This document shows, piece after piece, positions 1 through 7,663 of a stretch of 64,000 bases of DNA. Under the pieces are notes generated by a model, which saw nothing but the letters and a program-made list of their open reading frames with translations, did no database searches and was not told the origin of the DNA. A program made the translations under genes and the position numbers. The DNA comes from Lepidodermella squamata. Its lineage: Eukaryota; Animalia; Gastrotricha. Every line of letters begins with the position of its first letter. Position 1 is the first letter of the stretch. The stretch lies in the NCBI GenBank assembly GCA_047495785.1, contig JBLDXI010000007.1, forward strand, positions 2,418,001 through 2,482,000, read 5' to 3'.

Positions 1-1494
1 TTTGCATCTCAAAAAGTAACCCATAGCTTCAGATTGCTGAACCTGTCCATCTACCGCGATAAAGCCGCCGTAGATTCCAAGTTCGCCCGCGTATTTTGTG
101 ATTGATACATTGTCGGGAGATTCACCGGATGCGACACTGATGTTTGGCAGAAATGGAGGTCTTATCAAGCTCATCAGCACATAATTTTGCCTATCAGGCT
201 CATTCCGAATTTCGTGTAACTTTCGGCGGATATCCTCGCCGAAGTAATTGTTGCCACCACCTTCTTTCATCGGTTTCAGAACGAAATCCTCAGGTTTAGA
301 GATTCCTTGATCAATAGCTGCATCTCCAACTTCGCCTAGTTCAAGGCCATGCATTTCAGCGAAAGTTGACCTCATCCTCGCCATGGAATCAGCATTCATC
401 CCGAAGTGTTCGAGAACACCAGGTTTCGCTAGAACTTGCTGGATCTTCTTGTAATTTGCCAATTGGTGCGCGACACAAGGCGACTTAGCTGCTCGGCTGA
501 GTTCGATTGGCCGCCGAACTAGGTCCCAATCTCCGTTAACCCAATCGTAATTTTCTTCGTTGTAGCCTGTCCTGTAATAGACTACTGCGATTTCATGACC
601 TTCGACCGACAGCCGCCCAGATATGATCACTTCCTCTCGGTTGATCGAAGACCTTAGCTCAGCAAAAGTCCTCCGCATGGTCTGGATAGTGCCGTCAGCT
701 TCGCGAATCGCTAACTCAATCCATCGTTGTTCGAAGACATTTCTCGCAGGATCGTCAGCAATAATGAGAACCCATTTTTCTTGACATGCAAATATTTCAC
801 AGTACTTGTTCACCGCCTCGGCCATCATGCAGCCTTGGGCTTTGTATGGTTCATTTTTACGTCCACCAGGCAGCCTCATCGGCTCTGCATCTTGCGAAAA
901 GACTTGCTCAACGAAGAAATCGTGCCATTTGTTCACCTTTGATTGCATGGCCGACCCTCCAACAGCTATCATATTGTACTCGACCTGTTTTATCTGAAGT
1001 CGTTCGTTCGTTTTATGGAGCATGTAATCATTTCGGCTCAAGGCGATGTACAGTTTCGTTTGAGGCTGATTGTAAGCTTCTTCGTATAGACTCCACAGTT
1101 TTCCGGTGAAACTGTCAGTTTTTATAATGTTCTCCAAGTTGTTGAATAGGAATTCCCGGTCAAGAGAAACTGCGTGGATAAGACGCTGAAATGATCAAAA
1201 TCTGAGCAGTTCGAAATAAGAAAATAAGTTTACATGGAAATCAGTCTCTATCTGGTAAACTAATTCGAAAAGCCGTTGTGGGAATGGCATTGGGAACAAT
1301 AGGAAGGGATAGTTTAAAGCAGTATTGCTCGAGTTGGGGTCTTCACGAGTCCTTAAAAGGCCGCCATGGAGCATGACAAATTCTTTTGCCATTAACATGA
1401 TGTCTCGCAGCTGACTTTTCGACATGGTTAGCTTAGTCTTGTTAGGCAGTCTCAGAACCAGCTGCTGATCCGACTCGAAGGCTAGGATCTCCAT
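1..1494 (-). CDS. GSS: Glutathione-synthetase-like (eukaryotic ATP-grasp) paralogue 1; exons 1494-1234 and 1185 to beyond window start (3' end outside window)
   Basis: Phase-0 48-bp GT-AG intron 1233-1186 joins MLHGGLLR..YPFLLFP exon to an open frame with LSRNDY, QVEYNMIAVGG, ARNVFEQ, YYRTGY, KPMKEGGGNN, ELGIYG; homologous to the 2672-4211 gene with an intron at the same position. Confidence 0.9.
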
Positions 1495-2671: not shown

Positions 2672-4211
2672 CTATTCTTCTGTGAAGTAGGCCGAGCTAA
2701 TACATCCACGGCCGCATAGAATACCGGTTTCCTTTGAGTCCCGTGGTCTGCACCTCATTTGGTAGCCAGTCACTTGATTATTTATCATTTGCCCATCAAC
2801 CGAGATGAAGCCACCATAGATCCCAATCTCAGCGGAATATTCAGTTTCCTGGGGATCATCAACACTTTCACCGGGTGCTACGCTGATATTGGGCCAAAGT
2901 GGGGGCTTTATAAGGCTCATAAGTACGAAGCAGTCTCTGCATGGTGCTGATTTGATTTCGACCATTTTATCACAGATATCCCTGCCGAAATAATTGTTGC
3001 CACCGCCTTCTTTCATAGGTTTCAGAACGAAGTTTTCAGGGTTTGAAATTCCACAAAGCATAGCTCTGTCTCCTTCTTCACACAGTTCAAGGCCATGCAT
3101 TTCAGCGAAAGTTGACCTCATCCTCGCCATGGAATCAGCATTCATCCCGAAACGTTCGAGAACACTAGGATTCGCTAGAACTTGCTGGATTTTCTTGTAG
3201 TTTGCCAATTGATGAGCAACACAGGGCGATTTAGCGGCTCGGCTTAGTTCAATTGGTCGCCGAACAAGGTCCCAATCTCCGTTCGTCCAGTCGTAATTTT
3301 CCTCATTGTAGCCTGTCCTATAGTAGACAACTGCGATTTCATGACCTTCGACCAACAGCAGCCCAGATCTAGTCACTTCCTCTCGGTTGATCGAAGACCT
3401 TAACTCAGCAAAGGTCCTTCGCATTGTTTGAATAGTGTCGTCAGCTTCGAGAATTGCAAACTCGATCCAACGTTGTTCAAAGATATTTCTTGCAGGATCG
3501 TCAGCAATGATGAGTACCCATCTTTCCTTGCAGCTGAAAACTTCACAGTATCTATCTACTGCAGACGCAATCAAGCGACCAGTTGACTTATCAGGGTCAT
3601 TGATCCGTCCCTCGCTAAGTTGTAATTTGGAAGTATCTAACGAAAGATATTGCTTGAAGAGGAATTCGTGCCATTTCGTTACAATAGGCTGAATAGGAGC
3701 ACCGCCAACCGCTATCATATTGTACTCGACCTGTTTGATCTGGAGCTCTTCGCCAGGACTAGGCTCGTGTAGCATATAATCGTTGCGAGTAAGAGCTAAG
3801 TATATTCGAGGATGGGTATTTTTGCTGTCATAAACTTCTTCATACAGCTCCCAGAGCCGTCGAGTAAAATTATCACGTTCGATTATGTTCCCTAGAGAAT
3901 GAAACATGAAGTCCCGATCCAACGAGACCTTATGGATAAGGCTCTAAAAATGTGAAAAACATAATGAGAAAAATGGAAGTTGTTCAACAAACCTGAAAGT
4001 CTGTTTGAAGCAAGAAAACCAGATCGAACAAATGCCGCGGGAATGGGAGAGGGAATAACAAGAATGGGTAGTTCGAGGCTGTATCGCTAGATCCTGGTGT
4101 TTCCTTGGTCCGCAACAACCCGCCATGAAGCATCACGTAGTCCTTTGCCATAAGCAAAAGTTCTCGTTTTTGGCCTCGAGTTAGGCTTTGCATTTTACGA
4201 CTAACGAGCAT
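2672..4211 (-). CDS. GSS: Glutathione-synthetase-like paralogue 2, ~496 aa; exons 4211-3993 and 3943-2672
   Basis: 49-bp phase-0 intron 3992-3944; motifs LTRNDY, QVEYN, RNIFEQ, YYRTGY, KKIQQVLA, KPMKEGGGNN, EIGIYG match eukaryotic GS, but substrate loops are divergent. Confidence 0.92.
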
Positions 4212-5284: not shown

Positions 5285-7663
5285 ATGTTGAGGGTATCCG
5301 AACTTCATCAGTCCTCTCAAAAATTCAGTTGCATCTCTGAAATTCGAGCGCTTTGCAGTATGAGTTTTATAGCAGCGGGACTTCTTGTACTTTCTCTTTA
5401 TGCCTTTCAAACGGTTGCTGAAAAACCGTATAAACTACTGCTATTCTCAACGGCAACGTATACAGGTTCTGAGCCGAGGGATGGACGTATTTGCCAGGCT
5501 GCGATGCAGGTTGCAGTTAACACTGCGAACTCTCGAACCGACTTGCTGCCTGACTATGAGCTCGTAACAGACTTTCGCGACGAAGGATTTCAAGCGCAAT
5601 TTGCTCCGAGAAGCTACGTCGCATTCATCAGAGCTGCGGAAGAGAAAATCAAGGCAGACCGTTCGAATCGAACTTTTCTAGCCCCAGTGATGTTGGGAAC
5701 TCTCCAGACATGCAATACGATCACTCGAATTTCTCAGTTCATGCGGCAGATACAATTCACGCCAGGATGCAGCGGTCCTCAATTTACGGCATTACGCACG
5801 ACTTACCCTCACCTTTACCGAAATCGAATTCCATCTGACTTTCAAGTTGTACCAATCACTGCTTTGATAGCATCAACACCTCGATGGCAGCAGTTCAGGG
5901 CAGTTGGTTTTTCTGCGACATCTGACAGCTTCTTAAACGACACCTTTATTCAGGGATTGAGGTTATATTATGGCAAACAAGACCTCGGCTCGATCAACAA
6001 CGATGTAGTGGATGACGGCTTGATGTGGCAGATTCGACGAAGGAACGCTAGAATAATCATTGTAGCAACAGGCTCAGTGGCTCAGAGCACTCAGTTTTTA
6101 TGTCTAGCTTGGCACGCCGGCGTAAGACCTCCATTATTCGTATTCTCACTAGTCTCGTCAAACTTCATCGATCCAACAGCGAGTGATATCAAATTACCCG
6201 GCAACTGCACGAGAGAAATTTTGTCGCAACAGGTGCAGCACACATTATGGACCGGACCTTTCGATTTCGCCATTGAAGATCACGGCGAAACGAGTTTTGG
6301 TTACGACCAGCAAGTATTTGACCTACTATTGGACGATTTGACGAACAACTCCCGATCGCCGGATTACGTACGTCGTCACAGGTGTTTCGACTCGATGGCT
6401 CAAGCTATTTTTTCATTGGATGGAGGGGAGAAGACTTTGAAGTCTAGAAACAAAACTCTGAAAGATTTCGCTAACAACCCCGATGTTGTCTGGAAGGCAG
6501 TAAATGAGAGCGCAGCTGCTTCCGATTTCGTAGGTTTGAGAATAGGACGCATCAAGTACACCCCAAGGCTGGAACTTGATTACGAGCCCTTGTATCTAAC
6601 TCAATGGACCCCTAAAGAAGGAATGCGGATAATTATTCGCGCCACCTTCAATGGAAACGCCACTAGTTCCGTGTACGACCTTCGTAATTACCATGCAGAA
6701 AAATTGAACGAACCAATATGGTTAACAGCAGATAAATTGGCTCCGAGGGATCTCTCGGAGATATTCTATATCTATGAATCAATCACAGCCGCTGACTTCA
6801 TTGTCATGGCTGTATTGGTCAGCGTTGCTGTCCTATTCAAATTAGTCATCGGCCTCCGTTTTAAACAAAGGTCAAATAGATTTTCTGCAATACCAGACAA
6901 TTTCATATCAGTTTTGTCGATATTCGGATGTTTGATATCTGACGCAGCCGCTCTGAGCCTACTTTCGATTTACAGTGGTGTTTACTCCAGTGAATTCTGC
7001 CTGTTGCAGATTGTTCTTTCTGTTATCGGTATCGCCCTTGTGAACTCAGCCCTTCTAGCAAGACTAACATCATTATTTCGATGGTCTCGAAAGAGATTAT
7101 TAGCGAGAAATCTGACGAGAATCAGGAGGATTCAAGCCAGGCTTTCGTTAAACCAAGTGACTGGGGCTGGGATTTTGACGGAAAGATCAGTTCGTTGTAG
7201 GATCCAGCCTAATTCTGTCATTGAAGCAGCTGCATTCCTGACGATTAATTTTGGAGCTTTGATTGCGTTCCTCGGAGCAGATCCTGTATATCTGGTACCG
7301 CAAAGCAGTCCTGTTCAATACGACGTGGAATCAGATGCTTACACCTCGAATCTTAAAATATTCTGCACATCGCGATACCTTAGACTCTGGGCACCTCTCC
7401 TTGCTGTGTTTCACATTGTACTCCTTGCTTTAGGCACTGCCATGGTTTTCGAGTATAGATCTGTCGGGAAGAGACACGTAATGATTCGAGCTGCTGCTGT
7501 TAATGCATTAACCATCATGGCCGTCGTTCTTTGCTTGATGGTCCTGCTCCCAGTTGACCGGTTCGTTCTACGCGATTCGATTCTAGGTTACGGTATATGG
7601 TTATACTCGAATTCGACAATCATTCTACAGTTTTACAAGGCATTTTTGAGAATGCGAAATTAG
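5285..7663 (+). CDS. Intronless class C GPCR, GABA-B-receptor-like (Venus flytrap domain + 7TM region)
   Basis: 792-aa ORF; hydrophobic signal segment (MSFIAAGLLVLSLYA), AMQVAVNTANSRTDLLPDYEL, YPHLYR, NARIIIV, FLCLAW as in GABA-B-type flytrap domains; no Cys-rich domain; multiple C-terminal TM helices. Confidence 0.8.
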   Translation: MLRVSELHQSSQKFSCISEIRALCSMSFIAAGLLVLSLYAFQTVAEKPYKLLLFSTATYTGSEPRDGRICQAAMQVAVNTANSRTDLLPDYELVTDFRDEGFQAQFAPRSYVAFIRAAEEKIKADRSNRTFLAPVMLGTLQTCNTITRISQFMRQIQFTPGCSGPQFTALRTTYPHLYRNRIPSDFQVVPITALIASTPRWQQFRAVGFSATSDSFLNDTFIQGLRLYYGKQDLGSINNDVVDDGLMWQIRRRNARIIIVATGSVAQSTQFLCLAWHAGVRPPLFVFSLVSSNFIDPTASDIKLPGNCTREILSQQVQHTLWTGPFDFAIEDHGETSFGYDQQVFDLLLDDLTNNSRSPDYVRRHRCFDSMAQAIFSLDGGEKTLKSRNKTLKDFANNPDVVWKAVNESAAASDFVGLRIGRIKYTPRLELDYEPLYLTQWTPKEGMRIIIRATFNGNATSSVYDLRNYHAEKLNEPIWLTADKLAPRDLSEIFYIYESITAADFIVMAVLVSVAVLFKLVIGLRFKQRSNRFSAIPDNFISVLSIFGCLISDAAALSLLSIYSGVYSSEFCLLQIVLSVIGIALVNSALLARLTSLFRWSRKRLLARNLTRIRRIQARLSLNQVTGAGILTERSVRCRIQPNSVIEAAAFLTINFGALIAFLGADPVYLVPQSSPVQYDVESDAYTSNLKIFCTSRYLRLWAPLLAVFHIVLLALGTAMVFEYRSVGKRHVMIRAAAVNALTIMAVVLCLMVLLPVDRFVLRDSILGYGIWLYSNSTIILQFYKAFLRMRN

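Follow-up and report, generated by a model that had tools for sequence, protein, structure and literature searches.

To our knowledge, animal glutathione synthetase (GS) is regarded as a housekeeping enzyme encoded by a single gene, and the exceptions within the family are found in plants, with homoglutathione and related thiols, and in plant-parasitic nematodes, with GS-like effectors. The window analyzed here, a 64,000-nt stretch of contig 7 of Lepidodermella squamata (positions 2,418,001-2,482,000; GC ~42%), comes from an assembly of 121.2 Mb in 151 contigs and opens with two adjacent genes of the GS family, referred to below as W1 and W2. A sequence-only reading of this locus proposed that the substrate pockets of both proteins have been rewired and that the enzymes may be new peptide ligases acting on non-canonical substrates. 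The locus thus raises the question of whether these paralogues still use γ-glutamylcysteine (γ-EC) and glycine, and, if a substrate has changed, which of the two it is.

Two Glutathione Synthetase Genes in Tandem

W2 is a complete gene of two exons (2672-4211, minus strand) with a product of 496 amino acids. Exon 1 (3993..4211, 73 codons) begins with the ATG at 4211 and is defined by its open reading frame and splice donor; it gives an N-terminal match to PF03917 and is covered by the RNA-like run described below. A 49-nt phase 0 intron with GT..AG borders (3944..3992) separates it from exon 2 (2672..3943, 423 codons and the stop), which encodes the substrate domain and the ATP-grasp core. Exon 2 matches both PF03917 (GSH_synth_ATP, 1.1e-68) and the inserted substrate domain PF03199 (GSH_synthase, 9.6e-21). 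Family searches and fold prediction were run on single exons, and the exons were joined for alignments, dN/dS and trees. The closest solved structure to W2 is human GS (2HGS; E 1.4e-58, identity ~31%). The portion of the protein encoded by exon 2 (423 of 496 residues) was modeled with AlphaFold at a pLDDT of 90.3 and a pTM of 0.90, and Foldseek aligns the model to the closed human enzyme (2HGS) with an E-value of 2e-36 and a TM-score of 0.86, with a circularly permuted ATP-grasp fold. Domain content and fold thus place W2 in the GS family.

W1 lies ~1.2 kb from W2, towards lower window coordinates and also on the minus strand, and runs off the start of the window (1-1494). Its exon 1 (1234..1494, 87 codons) is followed by a 48-nt GT..AG intron (1186..1233) that is homologous to the W2 intron. 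Exon 2 (1..1185) is cut by the window start; the final 25 codons, including the glycine-binding A-loop, are found 1-75 nt before the window (contig 7: 2417926-2418000). The Pfam result for W1 matches that of W2 (PF03917, PF03199). Both proteins have a hydrophilic N-terminus and no signal peptide, and W2 contains 11 cysteines against 6 in W1.

Residue-by-residue alignment to human GS, whose numbering is used throughout, bears out the claim of the sequence-only reading that the ATP/Mg and catalytic motifs are kept. The set consisting of E144, N146, K305, K364, E368, N373, E425, R125, R450, and K452 is complete in W1, and W2 has all of it but for a conservative K452R. In W2, the R125 equivalent sits in RNDY (3776-3787, minus strand), and E-Y-N-M-I-A-V-G-G (3701..3727, minus strand) aligns with human E144-F152 (E-I-N-T-I-S-A-S-F), so that both Mg ligands, E and N, are retained next to the changes S149A, S151G, and F152G. 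D-D-P-A-R-N (3485..3502, minus strand) corresponds to human Q211-N216, with ERN changed to ARN and N216 kept. R-C-R (2747..2755, minus strand) holds the catalytic R450 and the K452R change, and the A-loop E-T-G-I-L-C-G (2711..2731, minus strand) aligns with human D458-G464, DGGVAAG. The protein also has YYRTGY (R267, Y270), NYKKIQQ, KPMKEGGGNNYF, AEIGIYG, and the R450 equivalent; K305, the K364, E368, and N373 of KPMKEGGGNN, E425, and Q220 are all kept. W1 reads E-Y-N-M-I-A-V-G-G and A-R-N exactly as W2 does, and its A-loop is E-A-G-I-M-S-G. The motifs that the earlier reading had given for both paralogues (NMIAVGG and ARN) and for the Ala-loop of W2 (TGILCG) are therefore as it described them. 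The change at K452, an ATP-contact lysine, was not part of that reading; together with G459T, it might lower the activity of W2.

Evidence for transcription comes from Logan contigs of a 2015 run (X1), which is labeled "RNA?" only. Its contigs span both genes' exons and UTRs, and their loose ends carry cDNA template-switch adaptor sequence. X1 coverage is missing from ~0.9 kb between the two genes and upstream of W2. One X1 contig joins positions 1885 and 1934 of L011 with CT..AC on the plus strand, which corresponds to removal of the GT..AG intron of W1; no joint for the W2 intron is found among the X1 joints listed. For transcription of W1 and W2, X1 constitutes good but not formal evidence, the run being only guessed to be RNA.

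A Five-Gene Family With One Conserved Member

W1 and W2 belong to a set of five PF03917 GS genes in the genome, three more than the sequence-only reading had seen. The others are C31 on contig 31 and another tandem pair (D1 and D2), which lies 230 kb from W1/W2 on the opposite, plus strand of contig 7. The position of the intron is common to all five genes, each of which has open reading frames and intact splice sites. The genome contains a single γ-glutamylcysteine ligase (GCL) gene (PF03074, 509 bits, one 662-aa open frame), and a bacterial-type GS (gshB, PF02955) is absent from it. The possibility that a bacterial-type enzyme relieves all five genes of glutathione duty was rejected for the latter reason. 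With one GCL and no bacterial-type GS, glutathione synthesis must rest on at least one of the five GS genes.

C31 is the gene to which this duty would fall most naturally. It reads E-Y-N-M-I-A-V-S-F, S-R-N, and S-G-V-A-A-G and has the highest HMM score of the five. Since the A-loop still has its Ala-Ala and neither S151 nor F152 has changed, C31 is presumably the housekeeping enzyme, acting after the one GCL in the pathway. The more canonical GS that the sequence-only reading suggested looking for elsewhere in the genome does exist, and its presence leaves W1 and W2 free to diverge. The one close relative that public protein data yielded, P0001 from two ENA metagenome assemblies, is 55% identical to C31 and 49% identical to W2, and its gene, like C31, has a PF01168 (PLPBP-type) gene as its neighbor. 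P0001 is a syntenic, C31-type orthologue in a related species. It reads A-I-S-L and T-G-I-A-A-G, and since both it and C31 have S151 and Ala-Ala, the C31-type gene keeps these features across species. When contig-7-type orthologues were sought in other species, a word-based protein search returned one member of the clade, which was the C31-type P0001, and two metagenome scans gave nothing closer than ~30%.

In phylogenetic trees, the five genes and P0001 form a clade with 100% support on a long stem. Within it, the four contig-7 genes group together at 93%, or at 97% when a gene-conversion tract is left out, and are divided into the sister pairs (W1,W2) and (D1,D2). The C31 branch is by far the shortest (0.21 in the full tree, 0.11 without the conversion tract). 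Pairwise identity among the contig-7 four ranges from 48 to 67%. W1 and W2 are 67% identical, with a dN of 0.24, a dS of ~2 that is near saturation, and a dN/dS of ~0.12; synonymous sites are saturated in every other GS pair. W1 and W2 are old duplicates under purifying selection. Differences between strains were listed for a subset of variants in the two genes (11 synonymous and 6 non-synonymous) and are weak evidence for that reason; in W2, four of the eight listed variants are non-synonymous. A nematode origin was also considered and rejected, the proteins being no closer to nematode GS than to other animal GS. The nematode SL1 leader was not found in the genome with up to two mismatches allowed.

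The γ-Glutamylcysteine Pocket

The sequence-only reading took the serine and glutamate changes of W1/W2 as a sign that the γ-EC pocket had been rewired, and this part of its proposal was not supported. The pocket positions changed in the two proteins are S149A, S151G, and the pair Q211D/E214A, while five of the side-chain contacts (R125, N216, Q220, R267, and Y270) are kept. Most of the 37 animal GS sequences in the comparison have alanine at residue 149, as does the active Globodera pallida enzyme Gpa-GSS1 (S4 Table of PMC5919673). In the potato GS/γ-EC complex, both serines touch the cysteine via the backbone, and small uncharged residues replace both of them in GS-like proteins (Lilley et al., 2018; PMC5919673).

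Nor is a missing E214 peculiar to W1/W2. The residue is missing from all five GS genes in the genome, where it is replaced by S, A, or T, and the canonical-looking C31 is among them. It is also missing in nematode, tick, and two other lineages. Across 42 aligned GS sequences, 16 combine D or E at 211 with a non-acidic residue at 214, and the remaining 26 combine a non-acidic 211 with E214; none has both carboxylates or neither, and the exchange involves at least five separate lineages. From this perfect reciprocity, we infer that the carboxylate binding the γ-glutamyl amine has moved by three residues, from 214 to 211. Of the six side chains that Lilley et al. list for the Glu pocket, W1/W2 retain four (N, Q, R, and Y); the active Gpa-GSS1 has three, and the proteins of Clades 2 and 3 have between zero and two (PMC5919673). 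Given that A149 is ordinary, that the serine contacts are made by the backbone, that the missing E214 seems to be compensated, and that five contacting side chains are kept, the γ-EC pocket of W1 and W2 appears to be essentially intact. Most of the supposed rewiring would then be ordinary or compensated variation.

The Glycine Site

What remains of the earlier proposal is the change in the A-loop. A scan was made for positions at which the four contig-7 genes differ from C31, P0001, and the general consensus. Very few sites emerged, and S151G was the sole one in the pocket. The A-loop pair was inspected directly and is A-A in C31 and P0001, M-S in W1, D1, and D2, and L-C in W2. All four contig-7 genes thus combine G151 with GI[ML][SC]G, and these derived positions lie around the point at which the third amino acid is joined. 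Residue 152 is more variable, with G in W1 and W2, C in D2, and L in D1, as compared with F in C31; D1 additionally carries N216D. The features that are truly derived and common to the contig-7 four are G151 and the replacement of Ala-Ala by Met/Leu-Ser/Cys.

These two features may not be independent. A residue other than alanine at 462 is found in 9 of 10 sequences with G151, among them members of three or more further lineages that are unrelated (F, M, or C at 462), and in 11 of 26 sequences without it. This association makes it possible that positions 151 and 462 are structurally coupled. Together with the 211/214 reciprocity, it advises caution where "rewired pockets" are called from the human motif alone.

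A changed A-loop is also a limited guide to substrate. The canonical G-G-V-A-A-G is lacking in W2 (TGILCG) and likewise in W1 (AGIMSG), while C31 has SGVAAG, and the motif is not strictly required, as active nematode GS deviates from it too. In Gpa-GSS5, the nearest tested precedent, residue 151 is likewise G and Ala-Ala is absent, yet the enzyme prefers γ-EC and glycine (PMC5919673), so that a change in the A-loop alone is no proof of a new substrate. Gpa-GSS5 is itself a weak guide because its in vitro rate is very low, at 23 units against a background of 2 (PMC5919673). The other point of reference is the legume homoglutathione synthetase (hGS), with which the loops were compared on the basis of Lilley et al. 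(2018; PMC5919673) and an alignment of PDB entries. W2 GILCG and soybean hGS GVLPG both have Leu as the first replaced residue. The hGS signature Leu-Pro, which goes with a preference for β-alanine, is found in none of the contig-7 genes, W2 having Leu-Cys and W1, D1, and D2 having Met-Ser.

Probable Function of the Contig-7 Enzymes

Taken together, these observations suggest that W1 and W2 are probably still glutathione-type, γ-EC-dependent ligases, possibly slower or broader in their activity, and a probability of about 0.6 is assigned to this reading. The four contig-7 copies would represent a lineage-specific GS expansion that has been diverging beside the housekeeping gene C31. W1 and W2 would bind ATP/Mg and γ-EC, phosphorylate the C-terminal carboxylate of the dipeptide to give an acyl phosphate, and then add an amino acid at the remodeled glycine site. 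The product would most likely be glutathione, made with altered kinetics or a broadened choice of amino acid as by the nematode Clade 2 GS, which by analogy W1 and W2 most likely resemble. The derived A-loop, which has long been conserved in four paralogues, and the Leu that W2 has in common with soybean hGS speak against this reading, and such a loop would also fit a real change of third substrate. A changed third substrate is possible for W1 and W2. This alternative has the contig-7 four accept γ-EC and prefer an amino acid other than glycine (e.g., β-alanine, serine, or glutamate) to form a homoglutathione-like thiol, which would make them neofunctionalized tripeptide synthetases and an animal counterpart of legume hGS. 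In its favor, the Ala-Ala pair, one determinant of glycine specificity, persists in C31 and P0001 and in none of the four; the derived loop has been maintained while synonymous sites between the paralogues reached saturation; the W2 loop aligns with that of hGS; and the canonical C31 is available for glutathione needs. The alternative is nonetheless tentative and the odds lie against it, as G. pallida Clade 1 and Clade 2 GS lacking Ala-Ala still prefer glycine (PMC5919673), the Pro that forms the second hGS residue is absent, and G151 with a non-Ala 462 recurs in unrelated invertebrate GS and may reflect structural coupling. That the four are γ-Glu-Cys-X synthetases with an X other than glycine, so that the animal makes a second thiol tripeptide, is doubtful.

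Two further readings concern the dipeptide site and the integrity of the genes. [quoted passage not shown] It is true that S149A, S151G, F152G, Q211D, and E214A all fall in the dipeptide pocket and that D1 has N216D. Set against this are the five retained contacts (R125, N216, Q220, R267, and Y270), a Glu pocket that is kept at 4/6 when Gpa-GSS1 has 3/6 and Clade 3 proteins 0-2/6, a loss of E214 that is compensated and common to C31, serines that bind by their backbone, and the lack of a signal peptide in W1/W2. Decaying or non-catalytic copies, whether pseudogenes or pseudoenzymes, are more improbable still. K452R and the 11 cysteines of W2 (W1 has 6) might be taken to point that way, as might the four non-synonymous changes among its eight listed strain variants, but the Mg, ATP, and catalytic residues are all kept and the structural model is confident. 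The pseudogene reading in particular was rejected on the frames and splice sites that are intact in all five genes, a dN/dS of ~0.12, and the exon-only coverage by the RNA-like run, in which the W1 intron is spliced out.

With one conserved GS and four old, constrained, and divergent copies in a free-living gastrotrich, GS is seen to expand in non-parasitic animals too. Because the differences among the five paralogues are concentrated at the glycine site, they offer a simple system for studying which positions set third-substrate specificity. Two rules for reading GS sequences also follow from the alignments: the carboxylate that binds the γ-Glu amine is expected at 214 or 211, never at both or neither, and G151 tends to accompany a residue other than alanine at 462. 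If the third substrate proved to be an amino acid other than glycine, the animal would be the first metazoan with a homoglutathione-like pathway, and G151 with non-Ala 462, as seen in further invertebrate GS paralogues, would point to an enzyme class that is widespread but has gone unnoticed. A literature search found no link between GS expansions and gastrotrichs, and the genome paper (PMC11660948) does not mention glutathione.

Comparison With Known Systems

The nearest known system is eukaryotic GS itself (EC 6.3.2.3; human 2HGS, potato St-GSS1 5OES, and yeast 1M0W), which has the same PF03917 and PF03199 architecture and the same fold. The Mg ligands E144, N146, and E368 are the same, as are K305, K364, N373, E425, R125, and R450, and in W1/W2 also N216, Q220, R267, and Y270. 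The differences are S149A, S151G, F152G, and Q211D/E214A in W1/W2, the altered A-loops, and K452R in W2.

The Clade 3 effectors of cyst nematodes (Gpa-GSS22, 5OEU; Gpa-GSS30, 5OET) likewise have the GS fold, conserved ATP and catalytic residues, and small residues at the two serine positions. They differ in having signal peptides and in having lost all six Glu-pocket side chains, neither of which applies to W1/W2, and they are much more distant from W2 (9e-36 for 5OEU and 6e-12 for 5OET, compared with ~1e-58 for human GS).

A closer parallel is provided by nematode Clade 2 (Gpa-GSS5; Lilley et al., 2018; PMC5919673). There too, extra copies without a signal peptide exist beside a housekeeping gene, the second cysteine-pocket serine (S160 in St-GSS1, S151 in human GS) is replaced by Gly, and the Ala-loop pair is not conserved. 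The two groups nevertheless have independent origins, the gastrotrich genes falling in their own clade with 100% support. The Glu pocket is kept at 4/6 in W1/W2 as compared with 0-1/6 in Clade 2, and W1/W2 lack the P[AS][AS][EQ][FL] C-terminal extension, ending instead in YFSDE (W1) and YFTEE (W2).

Legume hGS (EC 6.3.2.23; soybean 3KAJ/3KAK/3KAL) is also a GS duplicate in which the Ala-Ala of the A-loop has been replaced, and the closed soybean enzyme aligns to the W2 exon 2 model with a TM-score of 0.85. In hGS, the second residue of the pair is Pro, whereas it is Cys or Ser in W1/W2, and W1, D1, and D2 have Met as the first. In the legume enzyme, the Ser and Glu residues of the pocket are the canonical ones, and it arose by a separate duplication, the present one having taken place in an animal. 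To judge from sequence and phylogeny, the contig-7 expansion is the same kind of event as those that gave rise to legume hGS and to nematode Clade 2, with duplication of a housekeeping GS and divergence of its copies near the substrate loops, and is independent of both.

Gene Conversion Between the Tandem Copies

The two tandem glutathione synthetase (GS) genes W1 (window 1-1494, minus strand, crossing the window start) and W2 (2672-4211, minus strand) are not uniformly diverged. Their proteins are 86% identical across the central ~170 codons of each gene (W2, window 3028-3517; W1, window 282-771), as opposed to 56-57% in the flanks, and identity at third codon positions is 0.6-0.93 in this central tract vs. 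0.3-0.4 outside it. These identities mark the central tract as a product of gene conversion between the copies. The tract ends before reaching either the Mg-ligand E-x-N loop or the glycine-binding A-loop, leaving both outside. The W2 protein contains 11 cysteines, whereas W1 has 6, and several of them sit within or beside lid loops (LCEEGD, DICDKM, PCRDCF, RCRPRD, and ILCGRGC); W2 also carries K452R and G459T.

Covariation at the Substrate Site

Across an alignment of 42 GS sequences, positions 211 and 214 (human numbering) display perfect reciprocal covariation, with only two states: Glu214 with a non-acidic residue at 211, or Asp/Glu211 with a non-acidic residue at 214. This reciprocity recurs independently in five or more lineages of animals, nematodes and ticks among them. 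In an alignment of 37 GS sequences, 10 carry Gly151, of which 9 have a residue other than Ala at 462, and the combination is spread over several unrelated invertebrate lineages, represented by the compared proteins P0002/P0006, P0004, and P0015 and by the contig-7 clade (W1, W2, and the second tandem pair, D1 and D2). This distribution suggests that Gly151 with non-Ala 462 is an alternative arrangement of the third-substrate site that has arisen repeatedly.

Genomic Context and Related Copies

Directly upstream of W2 lies a receptor-type gene (5285-7663, plus strand), a single intronless open frame of 792 aa in which hydrophobic segments come after a ligand-binding domain of the ANF_receptor family (PF01094, 1.9e-10). 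Contigs of the RNA-like run X1 over stretch L011:585-4780 contain many short “opposite strands” joints, ~100 nt apart, which in all likelihood are not biological but artefacts, hairpins or chimeras produced when low-input cDNA was amplified.

The canonical-looking GS on contig 31 has a counterpart in a related species, known from two environmental assemblies only, that adjoins the same PF01168 gene (L012:2979-5517 and L013, ENA metagenome contigs) and features an extra intron within the glycine loop, between EGGG and GHN.

The most derived GS copy is D1, with N216D, K306I, and the longest branch. An in-frame ATG upstream of D1, outside the window (L005:1043-1123; G000:C7:~2646901), would add MRSGTFLGIFIPLIFAATFFLLFYNRI, and this extension from a putative start is possibly a signal anchor or signal peptide. 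Among GS proteins, published secretion signals are confined to the Clade 3 effectors of nematodes.
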